Notes under the pieces: generated by a model
Told to the model about the DNA's origin: nothing
What the model saw: only the letters and a program-made list of their open reading frames with translations
Databases searched by the model: none
Assembly (NCBI GenBank): GCA_044892525.1
Contig: CM097886.1
Span: 2,294,001 to 2,358,000 of the forward strand
Direction of reading: 5' to 3'
DNA: 64,000 bases
Source: Schmidtea polychroa
Taxonomy: Eukaryota
Shown: positions 15,900-62,620 of the stretch, in pieces
Numbering within the stretch: the stretch's first letter is position 1
How the letters are laid out: each line of letters begins with the position of its first letter
Made by a program: the position numbers and the translations under genes

Positions 15900-18640
15900 G
15901 GGGAAGTTATAAATGCTGCCGTGATATGGTCGAACGTTTTAGTCGATGAGAGGTTGTTATGTACCTTTTAAATCCCTTTAAATCTCCTATCAAGGTTCTG
16001 ATTCTGAAACTTGTGTGGACGATTTTGGGTCTCATCCTCGAGACAGACCTTCCTAGTAGTTTACTGTTTTAGTCACAGAAAATGTATTTTTTTATTTTAT
16101 AAATTTATTATGGCCGTTAACAACTATTTTTTATTTATAACTATAACTAATATGAACAATCACTAATGAGATACCTGTGCTTGTTTTAAGGAACATAATA
16201 GTTTTATATTGGGCTCAATATTTGAATGAGCAACTCGAAGTTCTTGGTCAAGGCCCTTCAAGCACGATCGCTTATCATTTTTTTATTAAAACTAGAGTTG
16301 AAAAACTTTCTTCACATATGTACGTGGTTGAAAATGGGAGCAGAACTTCAATAGCCTTTTCGGAAATTCGAGGATATTCTTCCTTAACCGCAATCCAAAA
16401 CGTATCCAATGGAACGTCGGAAAATTTTATTTTTAGCGTCCCATCGTTCCTCAAGTCAAAAAATTCGTCTCGAATTTGAAGGGAAAGAGCTACTGTAGAA
16501 TTTTCGGCATTCGCTGAAAAAGGATTTCGAATCCAATCGTATTGGTCTGTATTAATTATGTGAAAGTATTGGTGAAATTTCTGTTGTAGCAATGCTAAAT
16601 GTTGTTCGGCCAAACGCAATATGATCTGCTTGTTTTTTCATGCTTGTGCAATCCTTCCAATCGTCTGGTTGGTTCTTTGGTACATTTCTAGTGATCCTTG
16701 TTGTAGCTCCGATTGCTAAAGATCAAGTTTCTGTTTGAACCCGTCAACAAATTTTCATTTCGCCCTTGCATTTTTTTTATTAAGTTCATTCAGGTTTTCA
16801 AATATGTCAGCCATGTAGGCAAGTTTGGTCATCCAGTGATTATCTTGTAGGAGCTTGTGTAGTTCGGGCACATTTTGATTTAATAGAAAATTACTAACCT
16901 CTTCGCGAAGCTCAAATAGTCGTGCTAGAACTTTACCTCGGGACAACCAGCATACTCATGTGTGAAGTAATAAGGATTGATATTCCGATCCCATTTCTGC
17001 GCAGAGTATCCCAAAAATTCGCGAATTCAAGGCTTTTGAATTAATTAAATTTATAATGCTGATGCATTCATTCATTGTTGCCAATAGTTCCGAAGGTAAA
17101 TTTTTAACCATCAAAGCTTCTCGATGTATGCAGCAATGTGTAATTTGTATTGTCGGATTTTGTCGCTTCACACATGAGACAAACCCCTTTTTATAACCCA
17201 TCATTACGTAGCGCCATCCGTGCAATTACTCCATTGAATACCATAGGTTTTGAAGAATTCATCAGTTACTCGAAAAATTTCCTCACCGGTAGTCCGCTCT
17301 GGAAGTTCTTTGCAAAACAAATAATGTTCTTTTATGGACTCCTCGTCAACGAAACGTACAATATATATTAGTTGTGCTCGGTTTTTAATATCGGTTGATT
17401 CGTCAATCTGAAGAGAAAAATTCTCCGTCATTTTCAATTTTGTAATTAATGTTTTTAAAATATCGCTTGACATATCATTAATACGTCTTTTAACAGTATC
17501 AGCTGATAACGAAACTTTACTGGCTTCATTAATTTCATTAGGCCCAAACATTAATCGAATGATTTCCATGCATGCTGGTTTAATAAGGGTTTCGCCAATT
17601 GTGTGTGGTTTTTTCTGACGTGCAATTAATTAACTAGCTTTTAACGATTTGTCAGAAATTGTAACGGACGATCTCATAAATTGCCTCATGAAAAATTACT
17701 CATGAAATTACCATGAAAATCCGTATTGAATATATTCTGCATTGTATTGCCTTTTCACTTCGGTCTTTTTACATCATTGCTCGTGCTGGGTTCATCATCA
17801 TTTGTCGATAAAGTTGAACATTCTTTACGCAAAAACTTGTCCATATTTAAAATTATATAAAATAAATATGAATAAATATGAATATTTAATTGTCATATTT
17901 ATATATTAAAAATTATTCAAATTCAATATTTAGAATTGAGCGCTAGTCAAGTTATTTAGAAAAATAATTATTTGAATACTTACATTAATTTTTATCTTCT
18001 AAATTCACAAAATCACAGAGTACACTATAAAAGCTAACTTACGAATGAAAATTTAAAATCATCATGTGATTCAATAAAATAATGGATCACTTGTTCGAAG
18101 TCAACGAAAACAAATTTTTATGATGTATTTATATTTACATAAAAATTTATTGTTCTTAAAAATAAATTTCTCTAAAATTTCTTGTATTTATTGTTCAGGC
18201 TGTAAAACTTGGTAGCACAATATGAGACAATAAATTTAAATGTGAACAACCTGAAATGTAATTTTTTTAAACCATGTTTATTGACCGAATATTTTGTCAA
18301 CAACGCAATTATTTGTAAACAAGATAGATATAAGCATAACGCACGTGTCCGTCATAAACCCTATATTTTTTCTCGGGTAGGCATTGGCCGCGGCACACCA
18401 GTTGCGGAGCTCTGATCTAGTCGACCAAGTTTTCAAAGTGCACACGCTGTGTCCGACTTTCAGCGATTAGCTCGCCGCGGCTGCACTTGAGTCTGGTTAT
18501 CTTCTTTTGGAACTCATGTGCCTTATCAGGTTGGAGCCACAAGGCCTCCGTTTAATTTATGTTCTATTGGCGGCTCATCCGCTCCTTGAGTTTCTGGAAT
18601 TCACTAGATACTTGGTCGTCTACTTTAAGTTGGTTTATTA
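15900..18640 (-). pseudogene. Unknown family ORF-B, copy A (split by the hAT insertion; 5' part ~18420-18610, 3' part ~15900-16075)
   Basis: Minus-strand translation TEALWLQPDKAHEFQKKITRLKCSRGELIAESRTQRV aligns with YEGTWFSPPQMKEERKKILRLEHCRDSLLEESRCQRL of copy C. Contains internal stops. Confidence 0.55.
16075..18414 (-). mobile_element. Decayed hAT Buster/ZBED5-SCAND3-like transposon (transposase pseudogene 17844-16163; 3' terminus deleted)
   Basis: Frameshifted ORFs carry FSLQIDESTD, CTDGA, ITHCCIHREAL, WLSRGKVLARLFELR, KLAYMADIFENLNELN and LLPFSTTYICEESFS. 5' TIR cagagctccgcaactggtgtgccg ends at 18414, followed by ATCTAGTC. The paralogous empty site reads ATCTGGTC at ~20144. Confidence 0.9.
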
Positions 18641-18724
18641 TGCTTAAAACAATGGTTTGTGTTATTTACTTAATATTTGCGACATGACTGTAAGTATAAT
18701 TATATTTTATTAACCTTACCCTTT

Positions 18725-19385
18725 AATGACAACGGAACATTTGATAAATATTTCAGTGTTATGTATCAGTTCGGAATTCCTCGATAATTTATAATGATAT
18801 ACAAATCCATTATTTTTATCTGTTGGTTGAATTAATGCTTTATTGTTATTATTTCATATTTAAATAAGTTAGTTCGGTACGTTGATTGATCAATGTAAAT
18901 GTGACAGAATACTTAAATTGCCATTCTAGTCGTCCTTCATCAAATGAAAAGACATGTCGAAGCACGATTCACTGTAAATTATCATATTCAATTTTTAACA
19001 TCTTCCATTTTGTCATTGAATTCTCCACAATTCAGCTGATTTTGATTGGCTGTCATTTCCAATAATTTGTTTCTACATTTTCCATTGATTTATTGATTTT
19101 ATTTGTTATTTCAGATCAATGTTTTTTTTCTTTTACAATTTATTCTTTCTAGAATTTTATTTTTAATAATTTATCTCAAAAATTTATTATTTTACTTTAT
19201 TTCCTTTCAGTTGATTGGAATTGTGAAATTTGATGGCATATTGGCGAATTTCAGCTCGAATGGCCAGCTGAAATATTGTCACATCAACTGTTTCATTGTC
19301 TTCCAACAATCATAAATTTTCTATGCAATTATACAATTTTAATTTGAATACTAATAATCCAAATAATAAATCCAAATATTGGCGA
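18725..19385 (-). pseudogene. Duplicated 3' part of the TRAF-like pseudogene
   Basis: Direct-repeat copy of ~21025-21510. Reads ...LEWQFKYSVTFTLINQRT. Confidence 0.5.
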
Positions 19386-20330
19386 AGTTATAAATGCTGC
19401 CGTGATCAACGTTCCCTCTAAGCTGGGCAAACGGGAGGCCGCCCAGTTAAAAATTGACATTTGCCCACTCAGCATTTCTATCCGCCCATCAACGTTCCCT
19501 CTAAGCTGAGTGGCTGAGAGGCCGCTCACTTAAAATTGTAATCCAGCTCAGTCATATAATTATCCGCTCACCTGATATTTATTCTAATTTAGATAAAATT
19601 CATGATTATTGGATCAATAATAAAGATACGCGTGAAAAGATGTAAATAAAAATTTTGAAATTATTTTTTATTATCAAAATATTATGAATTTTTAAGTTTT
19701 GTTGAGTTTCTTTTTATTTATAATTTTTAATATATATATATATATATATATATTACCTGTTGAATTTTGTTTTTTTTTTAAATTTTTTTTCATTAAAATA
19801 TATTCTTTTCCAAAAGTTTGCCCAGTTTGTCTATTATTAAAAAATATTTGCCCACACGAATTTTCTGCCGCACATGTCGAAGAAAGATTAGTGGGATCGT
19901 TGGCCGTGATATGGTGGAACGTTTTAGTCGAAGAGAGGTTGTTATGTACCTTTTAAATCCCTTTAAATCTCCTAACAAGGATCTGATTCTGAAACTTGTG
20001 TGGACGATTTTGGGTCTTTTCCTCGAGACAGACCTTCCTAGTAGTTTACTGTTTTAGTCACTGAATTTTTAAATCTACCGCACACTAATATGGGAATGTA
20101 TTAGCGGAGTGTTACTTTGGGGTGTTCTTTGCTCGGTCGGCTATCTGGTCGACCAAGTTTTCAATATGCACACGCTGTGTCCGACTTTCAGCGATTAGCT
20201 CGCCGCGACTGCACGTGAGTCTGATTATTTTCTTTTCGAACAAGGCCTCCGTTTAATTTATGTTCTGTTGGTGGCTCATTAGCTCCCTGAGTTTCTGGAA
20301 TTCACTAGCTACTTGGTCGTCTACTTTAAG
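19385..20330 (-). pseudogene. Unknown family ORF-B, copy B (tandem duplicate of copy A)
   Basis: 20140-20425 repeats 18415-18720 and 19903-20065 repeats 15918-16075. Basic motif LGRSVSRKRPK lies near 20030. The W-x-x-P segment is deleted. Confidence 0.5.
19407..19902. mobile_element. hAT-type MITE with an internally duplicated terminus
   Basis: TIR caacgttccctctaa / ttagtgggatcgttg. Perfect 8-bp TSD GCCGTGAT (19399-19406, 19903-19910). The paralogous empty site is at ~15918-15925. The terminal motif recurs at ~19489. Confidence 0.85.
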
Positions 20331-21029
20331 TTGGTTTATTATGTTTAAAACAATGGTTTGTGTTATTTACTTAATATTTGCGACATGACTGTAAGTATAA
20401 TTATATTTCATTAACCTTACCTTTTAAGGAAAAGGGAAAATTATTTATCTATATTTTATGTTCATTAGAAAATATTTCTTAATCTATCATTTAATATTTT
20501 ATTTCTTTATGTTTGTTAGGATTAATTATTAAAATTGAGTATAATATATATAATTTCAAATGTAATTACTTTTATCTTTTAACAAACTGTAACGATCAGT
20601 ACCGTGTATATTTAGATAGTGATTGTTACTTATGTTAATTAACTTCAACTGAGAAGTACGTTAGTTCCCATCTTTTTATTATTAGATATTTTCATTGTGC
20701 TTAGGTTGACGAATGCTATATTCTTTGGCTGACACAATAGCTGTTTCAAATTGTGAATACATACGAAGTATAGGTTGTATTTTAGTGAGATGCTCTGGTA
20801 TTAAATGTATCGAGTGACATAAAATGAAAAACTATCTGCGATTTATTATAAAGGCAGTTGACGCCGCATTGGATTTTTTGCATTTACGTAATAGTGATTA
20901 ATTTTCAATGTCAGAATTTTCACAGATTTTAAATTTATACTAAATTTTCATTTTAAATATGTAAATTGTCGAAAATTAAAAAAATGAAATTTATTGATAA
21001 TGAAAATATTCAAAATACGAGTAAATGAC

Positions 21030-22205
21030 AACGGGACATTTGATAAATATTTCAGTGTTACGTATCAGATCGGGATAATTCATCCAAATCCATTATTTTT
21101 ATCTGTTGGTTGAATTAATGATTTATTGTTTGGGATGACTTCATATTTCAGGCTTATTTACATAAGTTAGTCCGGTACGTTGATTGATCAATGCAAATGT
21201 GACAGAATGCTTAAATTGCCATTCTATTCTCCCTTCATCAAATGAAAAGACATGTCGAAGCACGATTCACTGTAAATTATCATATTCAATTTTTAACATC
21301 TTTCATTTTGTCATTGAATTCTACACAATTCAGCTGATTTTGATTGGCTGTCATTTCCAATAATTTGTTTCTACATTTTCCATTGATTTATCGATTTTTT
21401 TTGTTTTTTCAAATCAATGTTTCTTTTACAATTTATTCTTTCTTCCTCCAACAATCATCCAATTTTCTATGCAATTATACAATTTTAATTTGAATAATAA
21501 TAATCCAAATATCAATAAAATCAATATTGCAATTTATTTACACTCGATTTATTTCCATGCCTGAACTCGTATTTTCTCTCATCACAGCATTTTTACCATT
21601 CAAATAATCTGTATTCAACTGATCAATTTTGGCGGATTTCTGATCATATTTCCTACAATTCTACCTCAATTCTCATTTTTCAATTGTCTCTATCTAATTT
21701 CAATTGTTTTGGTTATTTTCGGGCAAGATACAACTTAAATAACTTTATTTTCCTTTGCAGTAGAACCACGTACAACATATTCATATCAAAATATCCAGAT
21801 TAAAAATGAAATGTGACAATATTCTTAGTTAGCAATAATTTATTCTCTGCGCTCAATTATTTATTATTGACATTCATTATCTCTATTTCATTATTGAAAT
21901 TACCAACAACATCCATCAAGCTTTGTTAGCGTCGATATTTCAGATTGTAATTGATACGCAACTTTATCCTGAGAAAAATGCATTTAATTCATCCAATATA
22001 TTTTCACATCTTCTATTTTTACTAATTCATCAACATAATGACAAGACAATTCTGGACATTTCACGTCACATCTCTTTTCTTGCTTAAATATAGGTTCAAT
22101 ATTTACAAGTTTGGACAAATTTTCACTTTTTTCATTTCCAATTTCAATGATTGTATTCGTTAGGTTTTCGATTAGCCTATAAGCAACCCTATATAAAGCA
22201 ATCAT
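21030..22205 (-). pseudogene. TRAF-like (zinc finger, coiled coil, MATH/TRAF domain) pseudogene
   Basis: In order along the minus strand, with stops and frameshifts: DVKCPELSCHY (zinc-finger-like), INQWKM, KLNMIIY, SFHLMKG, EWQFKHSVTFALINQ, SLIQPTDKNNGFG. These match TRAF-domain landmarks (IWKI, FVIMRGEYD..L.WPF...VT..L.DQ, SF.RP...N..G). Confidence 0.6.
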
Positions 22206-22459
22206 TGACGATTTAAGTTATAATTTACAATGTAGGTAATTTATACTGCACAATTTATACTTGAAGAAGGCTTTTAATTTATACTCGATATATAGATTAA
22301 AGTTACGATTTATCATTTATAAGATCATTGTAAATTTTCATAAATACTCGCGTTCCTAATCCACATTTGATGGACAAATTGGGTCATACGTAGTATTATT
22401 AATTCCGAAGTTATAATTGGCAATTTGATACATTATAATTGTTGGTGTATGAAGGGGAG

Positions 22460-22790
22460 ACAGACATACGATCTCATGCATTAGCCTCAGACTCATCCCA
22501 ACATACATCACATGACTTCGTTAATATTCCCTCATGCGAGCCCGTGGCGATGGTTCCACGTTGGTTCTGCCCACACGGGTTGGAGTTGGTTAATAGGTGA
22601 GCCCCTACCTTAGGACTACTACTAACCCTCTCGCGGTACAGGTTCCAAGGTGCCTTAGAAGGACTTACCCTCAATCTCATACATCCTCGGACCGACCCTG
22701 GTCCAAATGGACGACCTTCCTACAATGCCAAACTTTTAGTTCATACATCGAATCGGGTGTTTCACTCATCGTTCACGTAAAATAACTCAT
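22460..22790 (+). pseudogene. Unknown family ORF-C (RW[YF]C), copy C, convergent with ORF-B
   Basis: SDSSQHTS...VPRWFCPHGLELVNR* (CGTTGGTTCTGC at 22559-22570) matches ...QRWYCTKGLSTRKK* in copy E, with the same position and orientation relative to ORF-B. Confidence 0.45.
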
Positions 22791-22965
22791 TAAACATCGA
22801 ATAAGTATATTAATTTTACAACACACATTATTTACAAAATAATAAAGGTTTCCCTAACATCCAATACACAATCACTAAAGATAAAATGAGAAGTTGTCAT
22901 ATTCTAGAGAGGTGGTTGCGAATACCCCCGACAAGGTGGATCAACACTGTCGTCACCTCGCGTCA

Positions 22966-23694
22966 TTAAAAGACTTCCCCGTCGGCGAACACTTCATCAA
23001 TGTCTGCTGGCAGGCGACGGTCCGCGAGATACTTGATGCCCTCGGCCGGTACGATTCGAAATATTTCTTTGGCCGGTATCACATGGGAACTTGAAATCTC
23101 CTTGAGGGTGGACTGGGCCACTGATAATGAAGCTTCCAGCGCTGCCATCGCATCCCTGCGCTTCTGATTCTTGGCGGCCCTGGTTGGCCGTTTCCTTTTG
23201 CGAGAAGGCATCGGATTATTTGTGATGGACGCGGCAGAGGGTGCCGCCAGGACTGGAGCCAAGATAGGGTCGGAAGAGCCTCCTACTAAGGGAGCTGGGA
23301 TGGTCGGCAGATAGGAGCCATGCCCTTGACAGTTTGATGCCGATGCTTGCGGCGCCTGGTGGTGCAGTGGAAAAACATTAGAACTGTCTAAAACGGGAAA
23401 TTCCCGAACTCGTTTGGCTAATTCTGCCTCCTTGGAGGGCTTCAGATTGCGCTTTAATTGTCAGCCGCTGACAACGGCTCTCCTCCAGCAGGCTGTCCCT
23501 ACAATGTTCCAACCGGAGGATCTTCTTTCGCTCCTCCTTCATCTGTGGCGGGGAGAACCACGTGCCCTCGTAGAGGTCAATACGCTTCTTCAGAGCCCCG
23601 ATATATTGATGTAATTGGGCGATGTCCGCGTTCTTGTCAGCGCAAGAAAAACGGGCGAAGCTCCTTGTTAGTATTGGACGATGTAGACATCTAA
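22966..23694 (-). pseudogene. Unknown family ORF-B, copy C (coiled coil, GTWFSP motif, Pro/Ala linker, basic tail)
   Basis: IDLYEGTWFSPPQMKEERKKILRLE. A frameshift near 23430 joins it to the listed ORF 23262-22966 (PSRKRKRPTRAAKNQKRRDAMAALEASLSVAQST). Confidence 0.7.
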
Positions 23695-25470: not shown

Positions 25471-25478
25471 ATACTGAC

Positions 25479-28305
25479 TTTATCCAGATTCTCAATATCA
25501 CTTCGAATAGCCATTCTCGTAACTTCTGTGTTTATTTGAAAATGGCTTTATTTCTATTTATTTCTTGATTTCTTGTTTATTTTCCTTAATTTCTGTTATT
25601 CCCTTTTTATTGTTATGTATGTTAGGTAATTTTCCTTTTCTATCTTATTTTTCATCTTATAAATTTCATTATATTATTAGTTATTTTTATTTCCTTTATA
25701 ATCTTATTTCTTTTATTGTTTTTCCCAATTTAGTAATTCTTATAGTTCTTTCGCGATTTTTATGAAATTTATTTTTCCTGTTTATTTATCCCTAACCCGA
25801 TTTTCAACATTCTCAAGATTTAGCCCAACATAATTTAAGCAGAAAGAGGATATACGGTTCCGGTTTCTTAAATAAATTCCTTTCATGATTGGCGATGTTA
25901 GGTTTATACATAATATATTTATACATAATATAGAATTAGTGCTATTTGTTTTCGAAGTTTCCCAAGTCCCGATCACAGTTTGGCATTTCTCCGCAACGTG
26001 ATCGAAGGCTCCAGACAGCACCGTCGCCAGTACCGTGAAGAAGAAACACTTTATTGTCAATGAATAAATTTTATTGATCTCAATATTTTAGAATAAATAT
26101 AAGCACATCATACAATAGAACCATATCCAGCAGAAACCACCTTGCAACCTCGGAAGCGGTAAAGGCCGACACGCTCGGAAAAAATTAAAAACGTAGAAAC
26201 GCTATGGCCGCGCTTGAAGCGTCGCTGTCCGTGGCACAATCAACTATTAATCAACTATTATTTATTTAATGCTGACAACACCTTTATTAATTCTAGTTAT
26301 TTCACATGCAGACACGCACTATAATTTTTTTTGTTCAGGTCTTTCGGAGGTCGCGCCACTTATATGGTACTTAATTATATAAATTAGTAAAGTAGAATAT
26401 ACCTGAATTAAAAAATAAAACCTTATGTTGTACTTAATTATATCAATTGGTAACGTAAAATATACCCAACTTTTAAAATATAATTTTATATCCTAATTAA
26501 ATATATATCGTATAAATGTGTACCACCTCCAAATTGGAAAATATAACTCGTACTATTTCTATTATCATTATACTATTCTATTATCATTACTATTATTATA
26601 TCGTGGAATAGTTATCGTTATTTAATACGAATTAAACTATAAACACTATTTCCACTTTTTATCGGAATTCGTCGGCTCTCTCAGTAGTACTAATGTGTCG
26701 TTAACAACACAAATGTTATGATGTTTATGTAATCGAGTTCGACAGGACAGGTGTTTTTCATAGATTAGTGAAAAATCGGTTCTAGCAGAAATCTAGATAT
26801 GGCATCGTCGATGTGGATATACTGGTGGATTCATCTGTACTGAAGGCAAGTGTTTATGTCTACTATTAGCGATTATAATTTTTGTTTAGATTTTATCCAG
26901 ATTCTCAATATCACTTCGAATAGCCATTCTCGTAACTTCTGTGTTTATTTGAAAATGGCTTTATTTCTATTTATTTCTTGATTTCTTGTTTATTTTCCTT
27001 AATTTCTGTTATTCCCTTTTTATTGTTATGTATGTTAGGTAATTTTCCTTTTCTATCTTATTTTTCATCTTATAAATTTCATTATATTATTAGTTATTTT
27101 TATTTCCTTTATAATCTTATTTCTTTTATTGTTTTTCCCAATTTAGTAATTCTTATAGTTCTTTCGCGATTTTTATGAAATTTATTTTTCCTGTTTATTT
27201 ATCCCTAACCCGATTTTCAACATTCTCAAGATTTAGCCCAACATAATTTAAGCAGAAAGAGGATATACGGTTCCGGTTTCTTAAATAAATTCCTTTCATG
27301 ATTGGCGATGTTAGGTTTATACATAATATATTTATACATAATATAGAATTAGTGCTATTTGTTTTCGAAGTTTCCCAAGTCCCGATCACAGTTTGGCATT
27401 TCTCCGCAACGTGATCGAAGGCTCCAGACAGCACCGTCGCCAGTACCGTGAAGAAGAAACACTTTATTGTCAATGAATAAATTTTATTGATCTCAATATT
27501 TTAGAATAAATATAAGCACATCATACAATAGAACCATATCCAGCAGAAACCACCTTGCAACCTCGGAAGCGGTAAAGGCCGACACGCTCGGAAAAAATTA
27601 AAAACGTAGAAACGCTATGGCCGCGCTTGAAGCGTCGCTGTCCGTGGCACAATCAACTATTAATCAACTATTATTTATTTAATGCTGACAACACCTTTAT
27701 TAATTCTAGTTATTTCACATGCAGACACGCACTATAATTTTTTTTGTTCAGGTCTTTCGGAGGTCGCGCCACTTATATGGTACTTAATTATATAAATTAG
27801 TAAAGTAGAATATACCTGAATTAAAAAATAAAACCTTATGTTGTACTTAATTATATCAATTGGTAACGTAAAATATACCCAACTTTTAAAATATAATTTT
27901 ATATCCTAATTAAATATATATCGTATAAATGTGTACCACCTCCAAATTGGAAAATATAACTCGTACTATTTCTATTATCATTATACTATTCTATTATCAT
28001 TACTATTATTATATCGTGGAATAGTTATCGTTATTTAATACGAATTAAACTATAAACACTATTTCCACTTTTTATCGGAATTCGTCGGCTCTCTCAGTAG
28101 TACTAATGTGTCGTTAACAACACAAATGTTATGATGTTTATGTAATCGAGTTCGACAGGACAGGTGTTTTTCATAGATTAGTGAAAAATCGGTTCTAGCA
28201 GAAATCTAGATATGGCATCGTCGATGTGGATATACTGGTGGATTCATCTGTACTGAAGGCAAGTGTTTATGTCTACTATTAGCGATTATAATTTTTGTTT
28301 AGATT
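25479..28305. repeat. Near-identical tandem duplication, 1413-bp unit (25479-26891, 26892-28305)
   Basis: Identical ORFs are offset by exactly 1413 bp (25565/26978, 25782/27195). No differences seen by eye. A third partial copy lies at ~28540-28665. Confidence 0.95.
26140..26255 (+). pseudogene. ORF-B C-terminal fragment (repeated at 27553-27668)
   Basis: PRKR*RPTRSEKIKKRRNAMAALEASLSVAQST compared with copy C's PSRKRKRPTRAAKNQKRRDAMAALEASLSVAQST. Confidence 0.75.
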
Positions 28306-29149
28306 ATCGACGTTATCAGTGACAGCATCAGGTCAATGGGAACGGGTTTTGACGTCAAATTTTCAGATTTCTCAGCAGGAGGATGGATCTAGCGGCTAAC
28401 ACGAGAATCAGGAAAATCGTAATTGCCATCTCATGGATCTTTCTTAACCGACTACCTAGTAGACCTTCTAAATGGCCTTCCTCTAACGAGATGAGCTTAT
28501 CGACAGAGTATGATTCGTTATGCTGGACGACGAAATCGACGTGATCGAAGGCTCCAGACAGCACCGTCGCCAGTACCGTGAAGAAGAAACACTTCATTGT
28601 CAATGAATAAATTTTATTGATCTCAATATTTTAGAATAAATATAAGCACATCATACAATAGAACAATCAGTTTCAAACCATACTTTGGATTGATAGAGTT
28701 AGATCTGAATGAACGAGTTGCTTCCCGAAAAGTGATTCCTGAATGTAATGGATCCTAATGAGGTTTGTGGTTGATGTAATTATCTTTCTGAAATCTGTCG
28801 TAGGCCTAAAATCTGTATTGGTTTTTTTTAAAGTCGTGGATTAAAAAATAAGTTTTTGCATGTATTGGTTTTTTGTAAAGTCGTGATTGACTGATTTTAT
28901 GCGTTACTTATATAGTTATTTTTGTCCAATCAGGATGCATTTAGGGTGTTTTTATTATTTATTGTTTTTTATCAATAAATTTTGTCTTATTTTTTTATTA
29001 ATGTTGGTTATTTTTCCTTTTTTTATTTAAATTTTATTACATTATTTTATTGCTTTATGTCACAGGTAACTTATTTCCTATCTTATTACTTAGTGATTTT
29101 ATTATTTATGTCGTTTTCTTTTAATATATTTCTTTGGTTTCTCTTTCTG

Positions 29150-29236
29150 TTACTGGGATTCTGGTTTCCGATTAAACTCTATCAACATTCGGAACTTAGC
29201 CTAACAAGAGGGAGACCTCGCAAATATCCATTATGA
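29150..29236 (+). pseudogene. Unknown family ORF-A (AT-hook) 3' end, copy D
   Basis: Ends LTRGRPRKYPL*, about 250 bp upstream of ORF-B. Copy E has the same arrangement (RKRGRPRKNLA*, 315 bp upstream). Confidence 0.45.
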
Positions 29237-29489
29237 TCCAGATATGATCATTAACCACGACTGGCAATGACAATGATGACATTTAATTTGTTGTGATAAA
29301 TACGTTTCTTAATCGTATTATTTCCTTTATTTGTCATGAAATTTTGTATAATAAATCGTTCTATTATCGCATCGTTATCTTTCTCTGTTGTAGTACACCT
29401 TAGCGGTCAGGCAACCCGACATTAATGCGCAATTAAACAAATTCTTCTTTTATGTATATGGATGCAAGTAATAAATTCTCTTATTTTTA

Positions 29490-29880
29490 TTGTTTAAACT
29501 GTTTGAGAATTTACGCAAAGACCGTGAGCAGGCCCAACAAAAAGCCGAAGACCTCCGAGTCCATGTCGAAAAGCTCAAGGTGAAGTGCCGAGAATTCGAG
29601 GGCACTTGGTTTAGCCCCGCTGAGATGAAAAAGAAGACTACGCAAATTCTCCAACTACAGACCCAAGCTGCACCGGACCAAATAGAAATCCATGCGCTGA
29701 AATTGCAAATACGTGCATTGGAAACCAAACAAAACGGAATGAAGCCGCAATAAGGCAAATACGGCCATTGGCCGTAGAGCTTGCGGAGATATACCCCCGG
29801 CTGCGGCAAACAAACCAAAAAGAAAGCGGTTAGGACGAAATATCCGCGAGAAACTGAAATACAAAAGTGAATTACAAATA
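29490..29880 (+). pseudogene. Unknown family ORF-B, copy D
   Basis: LFENLRKDREQAQQ...EGTWFSPAEMKKK. After a frameshift near 29750 it reads QIRPLAVELAEIYPPAAANKPKRKRLGRNIREKLK, clearly homologous to 61648-62133. Confidence 0.85.
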
Positions 29881-30002
29881 TCTAGAGGATTTGTAGATTG
29901 ATTAATGTTGAATATATATTTTTCCTGTATTATTAATTCCAGTCTCACACATCCATGAAATCAAGTTTTCTAACATCATGATTAAAACCAAAAATCGAAA
30001 CT

Positions 30003-30838: not shown

Positions 30839-30849
30839 ACGAAGTTCCT

Positions 30850-47539: not shown

Positions 47540-47730
47540 GTTGGTGGGTTACTGATGATCAAATATTTTGCTCTTTAGTGCTGTTACCAGCGTAACCCAA
47601 GATACAACATGGTTTACGGCTTGATACCCGCTGAGTGATCAACGTTGGTACTGTATCAAATGGGTGAGTGCTCGCAAGAAGTGTCCGATTTATACTGGCC
47701 CCTTTGCTAGATTGTGTTCTCAGATGCATT
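47540..47730 (+). pseudogene. Unknown family ORF-C fragment
   Basis: SAVTSVTQDTTWFTA*YPLSDQRWYCIKWVSARKK|CPIYTGP. Reverse-complement homolog of ~62250-62470. Confidence 0.7.
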
Positions 47731-49721: not shown

Positions 49722-50314
49722 TTAAGTGTTTCTCAACATATCCGCTGCAGTTGATCGCACAGTCTGATTTGATAAAGCATCCTTGCTGAATTCTTCTTTG
49801 GCTTTTTGTAAACTTCCTCCAGTTGTTCGAAAATATAAATTGACACGTATAATAATGTAAAAACAGGCGGCGAGATTCACAGAGAATGCAGTAGCAATGA
49901 TCAACATAAACACCATTACACCTGTGTTTTTATTTGCCATAAAAGATACTATCCATCCACTGACAAAAATGTAAATAAATAAATTTAATGCATTTTCTCG
50001 AGTTAAAAAAATNNNNNNNNNNNNNNNNNNNNNNNNNNNNNNNNNNNNNNNNNNNNNNNNNNNNNNNNNNNNNNNNNNNNNNNNNNNNNNNNNNNNNNNN
50101 NNNNNNNNNNNNNNNNNNNNNNNNNNNNNNNNNNNNNNNNNNNNNNNNNNNNNNNNNNNNNNNNNNNNNNNNNNNNNNNNNNNNNNNNNNNNNNNNNNNN
50201 NNNCTATCTTATAGTCGAAAATTCTTTCATTAAATACATTATTTACAGCAAAAGGCTTAAATTATCATTTTATTGTTTTAATTAATAAATGCTGCTACCA
50301 AGCAATCATCATTT

Positions 50315-50348
<34 letters not shown>

Positions 50349-53300: not shown

Positions 53301-55194
53301 TTTCACTTTGTTTTGATTCCCCTTTTTACTCTGTCGTCTCTAATTTTACTCTATTTTTTTGTCTCTAATTTCTTTTCGTTTTGCTCTCAATTTGTTCTGA
53401 TATAGTTGTTTGGTTTGTGGCACTGGTGACAGATTCTGTTTATCATTTTCCTTTTCCTCTACATCAGCCTTACCTCTGGCAGATGTCAAGATATTTTCCC
53501 ATTTTCCTTTTTTTGTTTTTCTGGAATTTGAAATTCCACCTTCATTTGTACTTCTTAATTAACAATGACCTTTGTTTTAATTTCTTGTTTGTTTCCTTTT
53601 ATTTGATTTATCTTTCTCATTTTTAATTTATTTTTACTTCTGTTTTATTTTCTGAGTTTTTATAAAGTTTTTATTTAATTTTTTCTTTAATACTTTCGGA
53701 TCGCCTTGATTCGGATTTGTTTTGGTTAGTCTATGTTTTTTGGTTATATTTGAGTACAATACGTCTTGCTATCTTTTATATTTTCTTTTATTTAGATGTT
53801 TTAACTTTTTTATGTGTTGGTGTTCTTAAATGTTTGGTTTTTTACTAAACTTAGTGCTGAGTTGCATGTTATGTCACTTTTAACGAAGTGATATAAAAAA
53901 ATGGAGAAATTGCTTGAGCTGACGGGAGATCAATGATATGTTGAAATAAACGGAGATCTCCAGGTGAAACCAGAAAGGTTGTCACCTTAGATTTTACCCC
54001 ATAACCGTCCTGCATACGCCACTAACTTGGATTGTACATGTTATCCATATCTATCCTTTACTGATATCATATTATTTGTCTATCCCATTTAATGCCATCA
54101 ATTTTGATTCGCGTTATTGAATATTTCCTATTATAATTATCAGCACAATATCCAATTTTTTATTTAATATAAATCTCGAAATTTTATTCCATTTGTAATT
54201 CCATCGCTAATTTATTTCACAATTTTTCTGCAAAGTATTTTAAAAAATTATAGATTTTTTTCTTATATATAATTGGTAAAAATTCCACTGGCAGAAAATT
54301 CGACGAATAGAAATACTCCGCAATAATCAGCAAAATAACAACATTGTTAATTATATGCATATTACGAGCAAAATAGAATCAATAAAAACGAATCAATAAT
54401 TAACAAATATTTTAACATATTCAGTATAATACTTAATATTTTATAAGTAGTATTTAGAAATCGGTTTTATTAAAGTAAAATTTTTTATTTATTAATTAAT
54501 TAATCAATAATAAATATGAACTTACTTAAAAGCCTTGTAAAGTGGCCGAAACCAGAAAACATATGAAAGTGGGACAAATAGAAAGAAGTAAAGCATTGAT
54601 AAACCAAACAAAGGTCCACTTTCGTCACCGAGGTTGACAGATATCATGTATGATAAAGCTCCAAATATGTTTATAAACAAAGTCACAGAATAGCAAATCC
54701 AGAGAATGAAGCCTAGTCTAACTATCAAACGATATTTTTCTGGAATTTCCACATCGATTGCTTGATAGAAACATGGTTTTATAGGACAGCATCGAGGAAT
54801 TGGAGGAAAGTTGTTCCTAGACGCTAGATGAACGTTTAAAATATCATGGTAATTATATTGCTTATTATTTCTACCAGCATATTCCGGTTGGTTAAATCTT
54901 TCTTCTTCTTCTGCAAGTCTTTTAGATCTCTCTTCTAAATCTCGTTGCATTTTTTCTAAATCTTCCACAGTTACTTTAGGCTTAGCTACCGGAGTTGCTT
55001 CTGTTGGCAAAATAGCCGGTTCATTATTAAATGGCTCGTAATCATCGATGACATTTGTCTTTACTGTTGGTTGAAAATTTTGTGAACTTTTTGGTTTTTC
55101 TTGGGTATATGTATCAGGAATCTATTAAATAATTACAAATTTAAATTTAAATTCATAAGTATAATACACTGAATGGATTAAATGAATCGCTCAT
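49722..55194 (-). CDS. SCAMP: Secretory carrier membrane protein; exons 55194-55168, 55121-54526, [unlocated], 49959-49722
   Basis: MSDSFNPFS start, NNFPPIP..IKPCFYQAIDVEIP, WFRPLYKAFK and GWIVSF...YFRTTGGSLQKAKEEF. The exon carrying xDSS and TM3 was not found. Confidence 0.9.
50380..50782 (-). pseudogene. GRB2/Sem-5-like SH3-SH2 adaptor pseudogene inside the SCAMP intron
   Basis: MTAIGVDNFN*KESDEFDVVKG...ENYLN*FKAECHKTGLVPENYIEML resembles the GRB2 N-SH3 (NWYKAE...GFIPKNYIEM). It is followed by KWIY...ETFFVMDSRNVGRGYF*RLS, which is SH2-like. Several stops and frameshifts. Confidence 0.55.
51950..52470 (-). mobile_element. Merlin (IS1595/ISXO2-like) transposase remnant
   Basis: IG.FCRRTKNVRCCLVRNRTRET and, after a frameshift, IITDRWGGYNGL..YVHNRINHRIAFVD....IHTELIERFWRTFK. 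Confidence 0.75.
52943..53850 (-). mobile_element. LTR (~52943-53165) plus truncated internal sequence, related to the element at 3385
   Basis: Starts tgttgggttattgagttggtg (19 bp shared with ~3385). Minus-strand AATAAA, followed by the same T-rich tract. Abuts a mariner/Stowaway-like MITE start (tactccctctgtcc, ~52726). Confidence 0.55.
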
Positions 55195-56039: not shown

Positions 56040-56190
56040 CGACTAAACGCCTATCGCAAGTGACGTTGGTACTGCGATTTAGTGGTGGCTGTTTGAAAAA
56101 TGTGAGCTCTACCCTAAAAACTGCAATGAGTCGACCAGCCTCTGGATTCACGATCAACCGTAGAATGTATAGAGCTCCATTTTTCTCTTT
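56040..56190 (+). pseudogene. Unknown family ORF-C fragment, highly diverged
   Basis: CGTTGGTACTGC (RWYC) at 56064-56075, then gtgagc and KNCNESTSLWIH, compared with ..CN..SSTLWVH in copy E. Confidence 0.45.
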
Positions 56191-58829
56191 TCTCTTTATC
56201 ATTTTAAATTTCACTGAACCTCTTACTTGTTAGCAACTACTCCGTACTATCCTGTCAGAATTTCTCTTGCAAACGACTTTCAAAGAGTTCAAAAAATGCG
56301 AGATAATGTGACAAGAGCTGTCTGTTTAATTATTTCCGTACCATAGACTCTGCTCGCTCTTGTTTCCGAGCGGCTTCTGACGTATATCGAGCTACGTCCT
56401 CTCGAAATTTTTTCATTTTGTTCAGTGCAATTAGATTTATTAAATTTATATTAATGTCGCAGATGGTATTTTTACTGCATTCCACATTTTCTATAAGGAA
56501 ATATTAATTAATAATAGTATTATTTATTTTGACTGTTAAAAGATTTCATGATCACTAAAAACATTCAGAATTGTGTTTTGATTTACAAAATTTATAGTTA
56601 TAAAAACTATTTTATTGATAGATTTTTTGGAGTAGTTTAAATTTACTTATTTCTTTATATAAGTTACAAATTCCTACCGATCAAAGACAATTGTTCGTTC
56701 CACTTTATTATTATGTTGTTTTTCTCATAGAATCTTATTATCAACAAAACTGTTAAACGAGAATAGATGAATGGTAAACTTTGATTTAAACTTTTAAAAT
56801 GAAGTACAAAATTTCTCTTTCTCTAATTTTTTCTTAGATTGACCTCCTGCTTTCTTTTCGACCATCTTGCAGTCATCTTTCCAGTTAATGTTTCTTTGCA
56901 TAAAAAGTTAAATAGACCAGAAACTGGAATTCTTTTTAGCTGATCAAAGAATAATTGAATCTGAAAGAAAAGTTTTTGTACCTGTTTATAAATATTTTAA
57001 ATACATAAAAAGATTAAATAATATAATATGCTTATTTGTTTTTATAGATTTATAAAAATAAATTTGACCTATAAAATCATTAATCAATTCACAAATTTTT
57101 ACTCTTTTTCTTTTCGTTTATTCGAGAACCCACTTCTGGAAGCATACTGTTGGGCTAGAACTGATTTTTAGACCCAAAATACTAATTGTGACTGAAATGT
57201 GTAGGTACACAGCAAGTAAAAAAGCACCAAGTATAGTTAAATAGTAAAAATACACCAAATAAACAATATTAATTAAAGGAGAAAACAACAAAAGCATAAA
57301 CACAAAAATTAAATAAAATTATACAAGAGCAAGAAGTTATGCAAAATCTAACTCAAAAATAACCGAATAAACATAGAGTTATAAAAAACAAACTCGAATA
57401 ACTTAAAAGATGGTAAAAACAGTAAAAGATTCCAGAAAAACCCAGAAAATTCCATAAAAATGGCGATGACCATCATAAAAGCTACCTTAAACAGTAAAAG
57501 TTAGAAAAATAAATAAATTAGTAATAAAAATAAAAATTCTTAAAAAGAAATTCGTAAAACATCAATTAAAATAAAAATTAAATTAAAAGTAATATAGAAT
57601 GTTCTGGAACCGTTCCAAATCCATCATGGACGTAAAATTAATGAAAAATAATTAAAAATTTGAACTTTAGAAATAAAAACAAAAATTATGGCACAAAAAT
57701 TGCCAATAAAAATATCAAAATCGCGAAATAGAAAATTCTGGAATAAAAAGAATTCGAGTTTATTTTAATGCATCAATACATACACGTGTACAAAAAAGGT
57801 ATATATACTGACACGTTTCAGTCACAAGGATCACTTTTTATGCCAATATTTTTTTGAACGAAAATTTTGTCCAGAAAACTAATAGTAAGTAGTTTTTCCT
57901 TTTTGATGTTCATCATTTTCATCATTGATATTAGTATTTTTATGTTTTGATTCATTAATGTAAATTGTTTTAATGATTTTAATTGATTTTAATCCTCTAC
58001 CTAACTTGTTTTTACCTTTTTGACTAATCAGCGACGTCTTAGTGCGTCGCTATTTAGTCCTGCATTTGATATTGATTTTTAACTAACAATTTCACAGGCA
58101 GACAGGCAATATCTTTTATATATTTTTTTTGTTCGGTCATCGGAGGTCGGCCACTTCATGGTTCTACAATGGAGTTGTGTCGATAAAACCCCTCCGCTAT
58201 GGCTCCATATATTTATTTATCGGTCGACAGTGATGTTTCGACTCAACATTACAATAGGGCTTGTCGTAGCGGTCACAGTGGGGCCGTGTAAGCAAGCATT
58301 CTTCCCGAGTTCCAATGCAGTACACATTTAAAATCAACATTAAAAATTTCACACACTACTTCACACTAGGATCATAATTGAGTAGATCTCAGACCCAAAT
58401 TAAACACAGCAATTACAATTCAGTTAATGTAGTCGGTTGGGACCTCCCCACTTAGGTGTTGGACGAACATCGTTAGTAAATAAAAACTTTTTATCAATTA
58501 AAATTATAACTATAGATTATTTATAAAAGGAAAAAATTTATAAATTACAAAATGGAATTTGTATATAAAGTGTAAATTAAAAACATCCTATAACCATGAA
58601 TTCTAGATTATCTCATAAAATATAATCCTATGCTAAGTTCGAACCCTGGCTTATATATATGAGCGGCTATGTATAGATTATATATGCACGATGATAATAC
58701 AATACAGGCCTTAAACATAAGATACGACCTATAATTGGTAACTCTATCTCGATTATTAAGTGTAAATGATAAGTGGTTATCTTAATTATAAAAATACAAT
58801 CTAAAAAGAATTATACATAAAATTTTTAT

Positions 58830-60100
58830 TACAGAAATATAATTTATAAATGGTGATATATAACTTTGAATTTAAAATATAAAGTATAAATACTTATGGG
58901 AAATTATTAAACTATAATCTATAAAGAATTATACCCAAAATTTTATAAGAATATAAGTTCTCAATAGTTTTATGCAAATCCGAGTTTGAAAATATAACAT
59001 ATAAATGGTTATATGTAAATTACCAATGTATCTTGATTATACAATTCGATCTACAAATGATTGTGCAAAAATTTTTTGGCCATGAAAATATAATTTCTAA
59101 ATAGTTAGGTATGAATTTATATTTAGGGATATGAATCATAGATAGTTACATATAATCCTATATATACTTGGACCTTAAAAATATAAACTATAAATAGTTA
59201 GGAAAAAATTTTTTTTTACTTATAAAAATGTAAATTATAAATAATTATATAAAAATTTTTGATTATAAAATATAAAGTATAAATAGTTATATATAAATAA
59301 ATAGTTATATATAAATTGTGTACGGATATGGATCATAAAAATATAAACTATAAATAGTTAGGAGTAAATTTTACTTATAAAAATATAAATTATAATTAAT
59401 TATATAAAATTTTTGATCATAAAATATAAAGTATAAATGGTCATATATAAACAGTTATAAATAGTTATATATACATTATATACGGATATCGATCATAAAA
59501 ATATACTCTATAAAAAGGTACGAATAAATTTTATTTATAAAAAATAAATTATAAATAATTATATAAAAATTTTTTTTGATTATGAAATATAAAGTATAAA
59601 TAGTTATATATAAGTAGTTACAAATAGTTATATATAAATTATATACAGTATCGATCATGGGTCATAAAAATATACTCTATAAAAAGTTACAAATAAATTT
59701 TACTTATAAAAATATAAATTATAAATAATTATGTGAAAATTTTTTGATTATAAAATATAAAGTATAAATAGTTATAAATCGTTATATATAAATTATATAC
59801 AGTTATTGATCATGAAAATATAATCTATAAATAGTTACGAATAAACTTTTCTTATGAAAACATCAATTATAAATAATTATATAAAAATTTTGATTATAAA
59901 ATATAAAGTATAAATGATTATATTTAAATTATAAACGTATATCGACCATAGAAATATAATCTGTAAATAGTTATGAATAGATTTTACGTACAAAATATAA
60001 ATTATAAATGATTATATATGAATTTTGATTGTAAATAGTTGATTATAAATTATATAGGTATATTGATGGTTACGATTTAATTTTACAAAAATATCAACTA
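58830..60100. repeat. Very AT-rich composite satellite (~140-150 bp higher-order unit built from ataaa-type subrepeats)
   Basis: Repeated blocks aaaatataaagtataaatagttatatataaa and gatcataaaaatata. Confidence 0.85.
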
Positions 60101-60970
60101 TAAGGGATTTTATATAAACTTGGATTGTAACAATATAATTTATAATTGGTAATATATGATACTGCATTACAAAGTAGTTCCAACAATTATCAGCATAAAA
60201 TTAGTTCTCTATCACAAAATTTAACTTACCTTGACAGTTGAAAAATTGTATATCCAAGCATTCAGTGTACAAATGTAACAGTAGAATCCCAACTGAAATA
60301 CCCAGCCATGATCAGGCTAATAATCTCCTTTGGAAGGAAAACTACAGGGTGAACGTTACCGATGCAAACTCGGCACTGAATCTGCATGAAAATTGGGCAT
60401 AAATCCACGATTGTAATATCACCGTAGCATGGATATTGAACTGATCCGGAGATAAAACAAACAACCAAAAATTTATAATAAGATGGTCACCCTGAACACG
60501 ACAACCCCGTCTAAGTGAGGATGAGGTGGGAAACCAAGTTCCAACAGCTCACCCAGCACCGACGGAGCTGGTTGATTCAGAGGTCAAATTCAATTAACCT
60601 AAAATAAAATCTTATGTCAATGACATAACAAACTTTAAAAATGAATCATAAAATATCAATAATTAGATTAAATAAACAAAGTGAGATTTATTAATGATTT
60701 ATTTTTTTTTTAAAAAAAGTTGAATTGCTGAATTAACCCTGTCAAATAGGATTAGATCTTCAGAAATTAATTTTGGTATTATTTTTATTTAGCCATGGGT
60801 TTAGTGAGTTTTCGGCGGCACTGATCTAACAGTGGGAAAAGGGAAATTTTTTTTTATTTGATAAATTATATAACGGATTAATAACCGAGATTTAAATTAA
60901 TATACGCTCCATTCAGCAAAAGCAATCATTCCCCTACAAAAATCTCTTTTAATTGGGTTTATTTGGCAGA

Positions 60971-61333
60971 ATGTCCCAATCAAGCGAATCCGACGAAGTC
61001 GAATACCGGCAGATGATAACACGGCTCCGGACCCGGTACATATGGTATCGGATACACGACTGGAACCGGGGGTTGGACCTCGATAATTATGGTCCGGTCA
61101 TCCGAAGTGGCCCAGAACCCGATGCCCCGGCGTGGGTGAAAGTAGAGCCCACCAACAACGTGCTCCGGGAAGCCCGCAATCGAGCGGCCGATGAGGTGGT
61201 GGAGGCCCAAAAGCGGCTGAGGAGACTCGAGCTCCAACTCAAAGCCGAAACACTGGGGGTAACTCTTGAAGAGCTGGAGGAGACCGACACCCCTCCACGA
61301 AAACGGGGAAGGCCCCGCAAGAACCTGGCCTAA
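60971..61333 (+). CDS. Unknown family ORF-A, copy E: 120-aa protein with a coiled coil and a C-terminal AT-hook
   Basis: Intact ATG-to-TAA ORF, visibly GC-richer than the host genes, ending PPRKRGRPRKNLA (canonical RGRP AT-hook core). Confidence 0.7.
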   Translation: MSQSSESDEVEYRQMITRLRTRYIWYRIHDWNRGLDLDNYGPVIRSGPEPDAPAWVKVEPTNNVLREARNRAADEVVEAQKRLRRLELQLKAETLGVTLEELEETDTPPRKRGRPRKNLA

Positions 61334-61647
61334 CTCATCGACAGTCGCGGCTTGAATGGAATGGTTTTGACTGATTTCATCCAGTGATATTTTACCTTGT
61401 AGTAGCATAACGAATTGTATTTTTCTTTTGTTCATTAAATCTTGACAATATAGTCTATCGTGTATCTTCGTAGTGCAATAAATTAATTTTTATTTTGCTA
61501 TTACATTTTGAACTTTATAGCTAATGGGGTGTATTCATGATTGAGGTGCCCCTTTTCTCATCACCCACTTATTAATTTCATGCACGTACTCTAACCAACT
61601 TTGCGCACCTGGATGCGAGCGATGGAATTTATTATTATTTTCCTTCA

Positions 61648-62133
61648 GTGTACCAGTTACTTGAAAATCTACGAAAGGACCGCGAACAGGCCCAGCAACA
61701 ATCCGAGGGTCTCCGAGGTCGGGTCGAAAAACTCAAGCTGAAGTATCGAGAACTCCAAGGTACTTGGTTCAGTCCAGCCGAGATGAAGAAACGGACGACC
61801 CACATCTCGCAACTCCAGACCCAGGCGGAGCAAGACCAACTCGAGATTCGAGCGTTGAAGCTACAAGTACGCTCGCTCGAGAGCAAATTGAATGAAAAAC
61901 TCATCCAGGACACCCTCCAAGAGCAGATTCGACCTCTTCAGGTGGAGTTAACCAAAATATACCCACCAGCCCAGACAAGCAAGCCGAAACGTAAACGGCT
62001 CGGGCGGAATACCCGCGACAAATTGAAAAGGGCCTGGCTGGCCGAGCAGGAGAAGTTGAAAGAGACTGAAGCCAATCCACGACCCCGAGAGACGTTCGAG
62101 AGTGCGACCCTCCTGGGTAAACAAACTTTGTAA
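61648..62133 (+). CDS. Unknown family ORF-B, copy E (intact frame, probably entered by splicing)
   Basis: 161 codons without a stop, containing QGTWFSPAEMKKR and KPKRKRLGRN. No ATG at the start, but preceded by the acceptor-like ttatttccttcag. Confidence 0.75.
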   Translation: MYQLLENLRKDREQAQQQSEGLRGRVEKLKLKYRELQGTWFSPAEMKKRTTHISQLQTQAEQDQLEIRALKLQVRSLESKLNEKLIQDTLQEQIRPLQVELTKIYPPAQTSKPKRKRLGRNTRDKLKRAWLAEQEKLKETEANPRPRETFESATLLGKQTL

Positions 62134-62166
62134 CATAGTAGTGGTTTAATAAATAATTCTTGTTGT

Positions 62167-62620
62167 TTAACGAGTATGTGATTGAACTTTGCGGTTGTTT
62201 AAAACAAGAGGATGGGTAGAAAGGCGTTTGGGGAAAAACAATCTCGATGAGGGACCGAAACAAATCGGACATGTGCCTTCTATCGGCGTCCGTGAACCCA
62301 TAGAGTGCTCGACAATTACAGTGCTTGACGCGCTCACTTTTTGCGAGTACTCAACCCCTTGGTACAGTACCAACGTTGATTGCTCAACGGGTACCAGGAG
62401 GAAAACAACGTTGTATTCTGGGTTACGCTGGTAACAGCACTTAAAGATTCAACCACCAGTAACCCACCAATACTTTCTTTGCGAAACTGTCATTCTTTGC
62501 TATATTCTTCATTGGCTTTCTTCATGGATTCTGATTGCTCGCTCTTATCACTTATCTATGTCATTTTGTGTTCTTCCAAGATGTTATTAGTAGCCAGTCG
62601 GGAAACAAAAAATTCGAGGT
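62167..62620 (-). pseudogene. Unknown family ORF-C, copy E, convergent with ORF-B
   Basis: SAVTSVTQNTTLFSSWYPLSNQRWYCTKGLSTRKK*...SSTLWVH...EGTCPICFGP. Confidence 0.55.

Follow-up and report, generated by a model that had tools for sequence, protein, structure and literature searches.

A stretch of 64,000 nucleotides of the Schmidtea polychroa genome (assembly GCA_044892525.1, contig CM097886.1, positions 2,294,001 to 2,358,000 of the forward strand; hereafter the window, numbered from its first letter) contains, between positions 15,900 and 62,620, scattered pieces of a protein-coding family whose recurrent member is a small coiled-coil open reading frame (ORF), termed ORF-B. These pieces are tentatively read here as dispersed, mostly dead copies of an old, diversified and unclassified family that is either a fragment of a mobile element or a non-autonomous unit. 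The unit is about 1.3–1.6 kb long and consists of an ORF-B gene of 160–210 codons followed, 230–400 nt later, by a 13-nt motif in a hairpin-prone block; in one of two subfamilies, the E-type, an additional 120-codon AT-hook gene, ORF-A, lies about 250–315 nt upstream of ORF-B. Both in the window and in database gene models, the family is placed beside unrelated host genes. A preliminary description of the window, made from its letters and a list of its ORFs, had proposed such a family and had assigned its mobilisation to an enzyme located elsewhere; that first observation was largely right, and its mobile-element interpretation is reasonable but unproven.

ORF-B is present in exactly five copies in the window, designated E, D, C, A and B, together with two tail fragments, as the preliminary description had counted. 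All 2705 six-frame fragments of the window were searched with a core profile that combined three pieces from the window with eight relatives from outside it; E (3e-35), D (9e-35), C (3e-29), A (4e-9) and B (5e-6) were matched, the next match having an E-value of 0.6. The tblastn searches led to the same places: the window's own copies, used as queries, join E, D and C and recover the two tail fragments, the N-terminal piece of C recovers A and B, and the outside relatives alone match the same five places.

The copies differ in their state of preservation, and decay is found among them at every stage (frameshifts, stops and truncations) and in both orientations. ORF-B of copy E (61648–62133, plus strand) has 161 open codons in a frame that is open from 61576, with a GC content at third codon positions (GC3) of 0.60, and there is no in-frame ATG ahead of its conserved core. 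ORF-B of copy D, which is also E-type (29490–29880, plus strand), is broken by two frameshifts and lacks its 3′ end, and no downstream block follows it. ORF-B of copy C, the C-type (22966–23694, minus strand), starts with an ATG after an acceptor-like AG and contains at least two frameshifts, with a GC3 of 0.59–0.62. Copies A (18420–18560, minus strand) and B (20115–20339, minus strand) are decayed C-type cores: A is interrupted by in-frame stops and still shows 58% identity over 33 amino acids to the outside relative P0007 (1e-10), and B contains stops and an internal deletion that takes out the W..P motif. These two cores lie within paralogous repeat units, unit A (15918–16080 and 18415–19381) and unit B (19903–21529), for which self-comparison of the window gives 78–88% identity at the DNA level between 18415–19381 and 20143–21529.

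The two tail fragments, placed near 26140 and 27553 in the preliminary description, were recovered as C-type sequences. The fragment at 26121–26257 (plus strand) contains one in-frame stop and is 74% identical to the tail of C (2e-8), and the fragment at 27534–27670 (plus strand) was made by a 1413-bp tandem duplication, with 99.9% identity. Because A and B share one segmental repeat and the two tails represent one event that was doubled, the number of independent events is smaller than seven. Exact-product look-ups of the window ORFs matched no record. The tandem duplication itself spans 25476–28305, with a third, partial copy at 28539–28667, and each of its copies bears a minus-strand, signal-peptide-like first exon (25785–26087, 27198–27500 and 28358–28630), the ORF-B tail fragments lying about 60 nt from the starts of these exons.

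The family falls into two subfamilies. The E-type comprises E and D and, outside the window, the proteins P0001, P0008 and P0002; C, A, B and the tails belong to the C-type, as do P0003–P0007 and P0020 outside the window. Amino-acid identity between the two types is about 30%. In spite of this distance, seven residues (L29, T39, W40, P43, I53, L56 and E66, in the numbering of E) are invariant over the six members that were aligned, so that the core motif, given earlier as variants of QGTWFSPAEMK, is real in the form G-T-W-[FT]-x-P, its T39, W40 and P43 being among the invariant positions. DNA alignment is limited to E and D, and within these to ORF-B (about 67%). Over 82 codons, ORF-B of E and that of D show 71% amino-acid identity, with proportions of nonsynonymous (pN) and synonymous (pS) differences of 0.14 and 0.92, respectively. 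The low pN relative to pS indicates that the protein was under constraint and that most of the divergence built up under selection; saturation of the synonymous sites alongside retention of the protein means that D descends from a lineage that remained coding during most of its existence. The view of an old and diversified family is borne out by these saturated sites and by the low identity between the types.

The family is also set apart by its base composition. The window is AT-rich (about 29% GC); in S. mediterranea, the GC content of the genome is 29.9% and the mean GC content of coding sequences is 36.6% (PMC6739440). The GC3 of the family pieces, including the decayed copies A and B, is 0.52–0.67, compared with 0.24–0.44 for the host exons and 0.28–0.40 for the window's hAT and gag-like remnants, in agreement with the earlier remark that the family ORFs are GC-richer than the host genes. 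The pieces form gene-sized GC-rich islands of 1.3–1.6 kb each, bordered by AT-rich DNA. The base composition of the family looks foreign to the host, and it is foreign in both deeply diverged subfamilies. Given the AT-biased mutation of the host, such a GC3 at saturated sites should require either upkeep by selection or a history that was partly spent elsewhere. This is the strongest, though indirect, argument against an ordinary host gene family.

Relatives outside the window are few. An exhaustive profile search of 1.84 billion representative proteins found seven; a later homologue search, which was swamped by an RBBP4-like fragment of the member P0004, added only P0020, and a cluster look-up added P0008, so that nine outside relatives are known in all. 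Neither ORF-B nor ORF-A of copy E retrieved a relative in word-indexed homologue searches. P0001 and P0008 are stand-alone ORFs of 157 residues with an ATG and a GC3 of 0.60, located on two metagenome contigs that are short and of low coverage. The remaining relatives are seven unnamed gene models from one batch, five of which have the ORF-B domain fused to an unrelated domain: CH, SNF transporter, ribosomal L21, DAD and glycine-cleavage P (GDC-P). A sixth, P0004, carries the RBBP4-like fragment. These chimeric models can be explained by dispersed copies beside genes, which produce such fusions. No match to a named host family or to a catalogued transposon ORF was encountered, all relatives being unnamed.

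Searches of domain, structure and virus databases were equally unproductive. No Pfam family covers the ORF-B domain; a PDB sequence search matched only the RBBP4 part of P0004 and chance-level coiled coils; and Foldseek, with the models of both proteins against the PDB and with that of ORF-B against BFVD, returned generic helical hairpins only, the best BFVD match (E 0.05) being among generic coiled coils. Scans of IMG/VR and JGI metagenomes with two protein profiles, and of IMG/VR with the DNA of the downstream block, were empty. The suggestion of an endogenous-virus cassette thus gained no viral relative from the BFVD fold search or from the three IMG/VR scans. The family appears to be confined to planarians.

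The RBBP4/RbAp48 fragment seen in P0004 is itself dispersed in more than 20 planarian gene models (P0004, P0009–P0019 and P0021–P0031), often joined to unrelated sequence; its partner is the ORF-B domain in one model (P0004) and a gag-like segment in another (P0023). Near-copies of an S. mediterranea RbAp48 protein (P0027) are present in the same batch as the ORF-B relatives. This dispersed fragment looks like a captured piece of a host gene that is carried by some repeat.

The second conserved part of the unit is a DNA motif rather than a gene. The preliminary description had placed a convergent ORF with an RW[YF]C peptide downstream of C and E. This peptide is the reverse translation of a 13-nt DNA motif, GCAGWACCAACGT, and the peptide contexts around its sites are unrelated, so the supposed third ORF has to be replaced by the motif. 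Four sites with at most one mismatch are present in the window, compared with 0.03 expected. The block of copy E (62335–62470, plus strand) is non-coding and hairpin-prone, and its 13-mer (62364–62376) lies 231 nt past the ORF-B stop in the same orientation. This block, 136 nt long, is 78% identical to a solitary block at 47541–47683 (minus strand; 13-mer at 47642–47654) that has no adjoining ORF-B. A second solitary block, weakly matched (56058–56109, minus strand; profile E 0.46), contains an exact 13-mer at 56063–56075, around which the stem differs in sequence.

The counterpart downstream of copy C (22495–22582, minus strand) is weak. It contains an exact 13-mer (22558–22570) in the same orientation as ORF-B, 396 nt past its stop. 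With a profile of two blocks (nhmmer), the region ranks fourth in the window (E 0.22), a value that becomes about 1e-3 for the expected place; plain local alignment with the E block is not significant, because 37 of 300 shuffles reached the score. The E block folds far better than its shuffles (z = −4.6) and has one compensatory pair, and the region downstream of C shows no unusual structure (z = −0.9). In the alignment of all four sites, 7 of 13 pairs covary, which points to a hairpin with changing stems around a fixed motif, thinly given that only four sequences are compared. Rfam and tRNA scans of the sequence found no match. We regard the 13-mer block as a candidate cis-acting site rather than a gene.

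ORF-A is intact only in copy E, where it extends over 120 codons from ATG to stop (60971–61333, plus strand; GC 0.59, GC3 0.67) and ends 315 nt upstream of ORF-B. Two long helices are predicted for it (AlphaFold2, predicted local distance difference test score, pLDDT, 70), and its C-terminus is an AT-hook, with the R-G-R-P core amid basic residues. In copy D, the last 10 codons of ORF-A remain (29207–29236, plus strand), with the AT-hook core and the stop, 254 nt upstream of ORF-B; this remnant shares six identical residues and an in-register stop with ORF-A of E, everything further upstream is lost, and the remainder of the ORF listed there is AT-rich sequence unrelated to ORF-A. The match is not significant window-wide (E 4.2) and reaches about 0.01 within the expected 400 nt. 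The AT-hook definition, an R-G-R-P core flanked by basic residues, fits both ORF-A of E and the remnant of D. No ORF-A was found in copies C, A and B. The AT-hook ORF that had been described upstream of both D and E therefore stands in full for E and as a 10-codon remnant for D, and the conserved A-B-C order that had been proposed is complete in E, occurs in no other copy and has a DNA motif as its third element. ORF-A has no homologue in word-indexed, Pfam, PDB sequence or Foldseek PDB searches; its only Pfam match, DUF5551, is sub-threshold (16.5 bits versus a cut-off of 25), and no mention of DUF5551 was found in the literature.

The spacer between ORF-A and ORF-B of copy E (61334–61647, plus strand) contains an AATAAA and, about 30 nt before ORF-B, a short block that is shared with D. 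A pyrimidine-rich, acceptor-like AG immediately precedes ORF-B of copy E, and this feature recurs in L001 and L002, two sequences that come from the ENA samples ERZ2271643 and ERZ2270917. A model in which ORF-A and ORF-B of E are joined by splicing was considered: a donor/acceptor pair in frame is available, but the acceptor is not common to L001, and the model is unsupported.

The predicted structure of ORF-B of copy E (AlphaFold2, pLDDT 82) consists of a helix at residues 2–37, a turn at G-T-W-F, a helix at 43–104, a linker and a helix at 120–142 with a K/R patch. By eye, with the tails unaligned, a basic patch around R-P-x-[RK]-A-A-[RK] recurs in P0001, P0002 and C, and P0007, a C-type relative, has a PPxY-like motif near its end. 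From these features we infer that ORF-B may encode an oligomerising nuclear protein that binds nucleic acid, an assignment that draws on the general properties of coiled coils, AT-hooks and basic patches. In the model proposed here, the ORF-B protein would form a helical hairpin, with the coiled coil serving for pairing and the basic R/K patch for nucleic-acid binding, ORF-A would tether to AT-rich DNA through its AT-hook, and the 13-mer block would act in cis as a site. The unit would spread, or would once have spread, as a non-autonomous or fragmentary mobile element by using an enzyme encoded elsewhere, the class of which cannot be named from the window.

Pfam scans covered selected ORFs of at least 75 codons between 15.9 and 32 kb and around E. 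Except for an inserted hAT remnant, no reverse transcriptase (RT), integrase, tyrosine recombinase, PolB, Rep, transposase or capsid domain was found in these scanned ORFs, which agrees with the earlier statement that no mobilising enzyme is visible beside any copy.

Several observations weigh against reading the copies as those of a mobile element. Self-comparison of the window and an inverted-repeat search revealed no shared termini, target-site duplications, long terminal repeats (LTRs) or terminal inverted repeats, and no empty sites were found for the family copies, so mobility, which the preliminary description had assumed, is not shown. Flanks outside the ORF do not align between copies, so the ends of the unit are undefined, and no window copy has been shown to be functional. 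The pattern of the 13-mer was derived from the same four sites that were counted. The acceptor-like AG just before the ORFs of E, C, L001 and L002, at a point equivalent to the gene-model junction of P0002, and the AATAAA after the ORFs are ordinary-looking host gene signals, and indicate that the genes carry host-type expression signals. Finally, seven family pieces, and two solitary motif blocks in addition, lie within 46 kb, compared with nine relatives in the databases; such a concentration, in a family so sparsely represented in databases, is more readily explained by local duplication of a resident locus than by random transposition. The clustering of deeply diverged pieces may reflect local duplication or a tolerant region.

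Some of these observations lend weight to a lineage-specific host multigene family of small nuclear coiled-coil proteins with basic tails, which would have evolved by local duplication and by birth and death with many pseudogenes. This explanation is unlikely but deserves to be kept in view. It would account for the local clustering of the C-type pieces at 18–28 kb, where A/B and the tail pair arose by straightforward segmental or tandem duplication, for the purifying selection between E and D, for the splice- and polyadenylation-like signals around the ORFs and for the missing transposon termini. Its main difficulty is the base composition, because resident genes with saturated synonymous sites should drift to the composition of the host, and the GC3 of the family is far from that of the window's host exons and from the AT-rich average of host coding sequences. 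In addition, the fusion of database members to five unrelated host domains implies scattered locations, no named or annotated family matches, and most window copies are dead. A direct comparison with annotated host gene families likewise gave no named homologues and no consistent architecture.

Repeated capture from a GC-richer, exogenous planarian replicon is a rather improbable source of the copies. Such a replicon, for example a virus or virus-like agent of a kind not yet recognised, would carry two small genes for DNA- or RNA-binding proteins and a hairpin site whose loop motif is conserved. Capture of this kind would be consistent with the foreign codon composition kept in both deeply diverged subfamilies, with the gene-sized GC-rich islands in AT-rich DNA, with the retention of the protein and the 13-mer while non-coding sequence became unalignable, and with the unusually stable fold of the E block and some covariation over the four sites. 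These points are opposed by the absence of a viral homologue in BFVD and in the three IMG/VR scans, by the lack of a replication or capsid gene nearby and by the ordinary folding of the block downstream of C. A delta-agent-like element was also considered and rejected: the E unit (60950–62480) is not rod-like (z = −1.2, 10% long-range pairs), no ribozyme or other Rfam match was found at E ≤ 1, and the sole delta-antigen match, in the PDB, is at chance level (E 0.62). The most specific form of this idea, in which the copies would be repeated, long-term endogenisations of a small GC-rich planarian replicon, virus- or plasmid-like and without a hallmark gene, that encodes two helical nucleic-acid-binding proteins and uses the GCAGWACCAACGT hairpin loop as its cis-acting site, is quite doubtful.

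It is very improbable that the copies are fragments of an accessory module from one of the large catalogued elements (giant Gypsy/Burro, Polinton or Crypton, the carriers suggested earlier): planarian Burro-type elements do carry extra ORFs of unknown function (PMC6431247) and gag-like remnants occur elsewhere in the window at 5.2–6.7 kb, but none of the copies is flanked by LTR-like direct repeats, the scanned ORFs around A–E yielded no domain of an RT, integrase, PolB, tyrosine recombinase or capsid protein, the GC-rich islands are just 1.3–1.6 kb long within AT-rich DNA, and the gag-like and hAT remnants have a host-like GC3, which the family does not.

Planarian genomes consist mostly of repeats, a large share of which is unclassified, and the family offers a clean and testable example. 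An unclassified planarian repeat is not surprising in itself; what makes it a worthwhile, moderate lead is the combination of orphan proteins, past constraint, foreign composition and an invariant 13-mer. The invariant short DNA motif could mark the cis-acting end of the family. If the family is mobile without a linked enzyme, it would be a new non-autonomous element and would lead to its partner; should it have an exogenous relative, an agent of planarians that has so far escaped notice would be revealed; and if it is a resident gene family, its composition needs to be explained. In any case, family copies contaminate gene models as false fusions.

The pieces are interspersed with host genes and other repeats. 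A long coiled-coil gene at 32.7–41.5 kb (minus strand) is TPR-like by eye, a label that no search confirms, and Pfam scans of ORFs identified a taxilin exon at 44691–45119 and a SCAMP exon at 54522–55010. A hAT-type transposase remnant (16278–17629, minus strand), with sub-threshold matches to DUF4371 and to the hAT dimerisation domain, sits within a 2.3-kb insertion that splits repeat unit A relative to unit B. The gag-like ORFs (5218–6723, minus strand) have a zinc-knuckle-like motif and a host-like GC3 of 0.34–0.40, and one shows 54% identity over 103 residues to part of the gene model P0023, which belongs to the batch that holds the ORF-B relatives. Together with a base composition like that of S. 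mediterranea and the RbAp48 near-copies in that batch, this similarity suggests a triclad planarian host, Schmidtea or a close relative. An AT-rich, satellite-like array (58779–60157; units 65–75% alike) lies immediately upstream of the copy E region. Directly past copy E, at 62640–62870, is a unit resembling a miniature inverted-repeat transposable element (MITE), with perfect 25-nt inverted arms (62698–62722 and 62843–62867); this unrelated unit (62698–62867) contains the only inverted repeats near E, and a second, partial copy of it at 941–998 (90% over 59 nt) abuts an assembly gap (768–940). Past the MITE-like unit, a short ORF (63080–63225, plus strand) encodes a proline/serine-rich stretch followed by a basic K-R-K-R-type tail and showed no relation to ORF-A or ORF-B in the searches made.

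Two assembly gaps, at 44216–44349 and 50013–50203, interrupt the region that contains the family. The sequence around them is non-coding-looking (GC 0.26–0.28), neither touches a family ORF, and the closest family part is 2.3 kb away. Linkage of the cluster at 15.9–30 kb to the pieces at 47.5, 56 and 61–62 kb across the two gaps depends on the scaffold. Sequence from the right edge of the first gap recurs at a distance of 172 nt (44350–44485 and 44522–44657, 98.5% identity), beside the taxilin exon, and this repeat is probably a gap-edge duplication, that is, an assembly artefact.

The unit lacks defining features of several established classes of mobile elements. With respect to LTR retrotransposons, no direct repeats bracket any copy, the 3′ side of E being only partly visible because E lies 1.9 kb from the window end, and the scanned ORFs contain no gag-pol domain (protease, RT, RNase H or integrase). 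With respect to Polintons/Mavericks, no PolB, integrase or capsid match to Pfam was found in these ORFs, and no inverted repeats bracket the units; with respect to Cryptons and DIRS elements, there is no tyrosine recombinase domain; and with respect to Helitrons, there is no Rep/helicase domain, the hairpin-prone block being present and a defined terminus not located.

A resemblance to retroelement ORF1/Gag-like proteins exists at the protein level. Like them, ORF-B is small and helical, probably oligomerises by its coiled coil and has a basic tail, and P0007 has its PPxY-like motif; the solitary 3′ blocks resemble 5′-truncated copies, and these blocks and the copies without ORF-A would fit 5′ truncation of a non-LTR element. 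In contrast to such elements, no RT/endonuclease ORF follows ORF-B, no RRM, CCHC or Transposase_22 domain is present, there is no poly(A) or terminal repeat, and ORF-B has neither a sequence nor a fold match. ORF-A recalls AT-hook chromatin proteins of the HMGA type in that it ends in an R-G-R-P core, which is kept in the D remnant; unlike HMGA, it has a single hook on an unrelated two-helix protein that is homologous neither to HMGA nor to any Pfam family.

The downstream block differs from rolling-circle stem-loop origins and from the 3′ ends of stringent-type long interspersed nuclear elements (LINEs) in that no Rep/helicase or RT gene accompanies it, its shared structure is weak (four sequences) and it has no defined terminus. 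It is similar to them in having a short invariant motif in hairpin-prone sequence while the stems vary, and in the position of this motif on the 3′ side of the unit and its occurrence alone. A further close parallel is offered by the unclassified planarian repeats, including the accessory ORFs of giant Gypsy/Burro elements. From these repeats the family differs in its lack of nearby LTRs, gag-pol and env, in its unit of about 1.5 kb and in a GC3 far above that of the window's transposon remnants. In common with them, it is apparently planarian-restricted, dispersed and mostly decayed, it carries ORFs of unknown function, and its copies enter gene models as chimeras.

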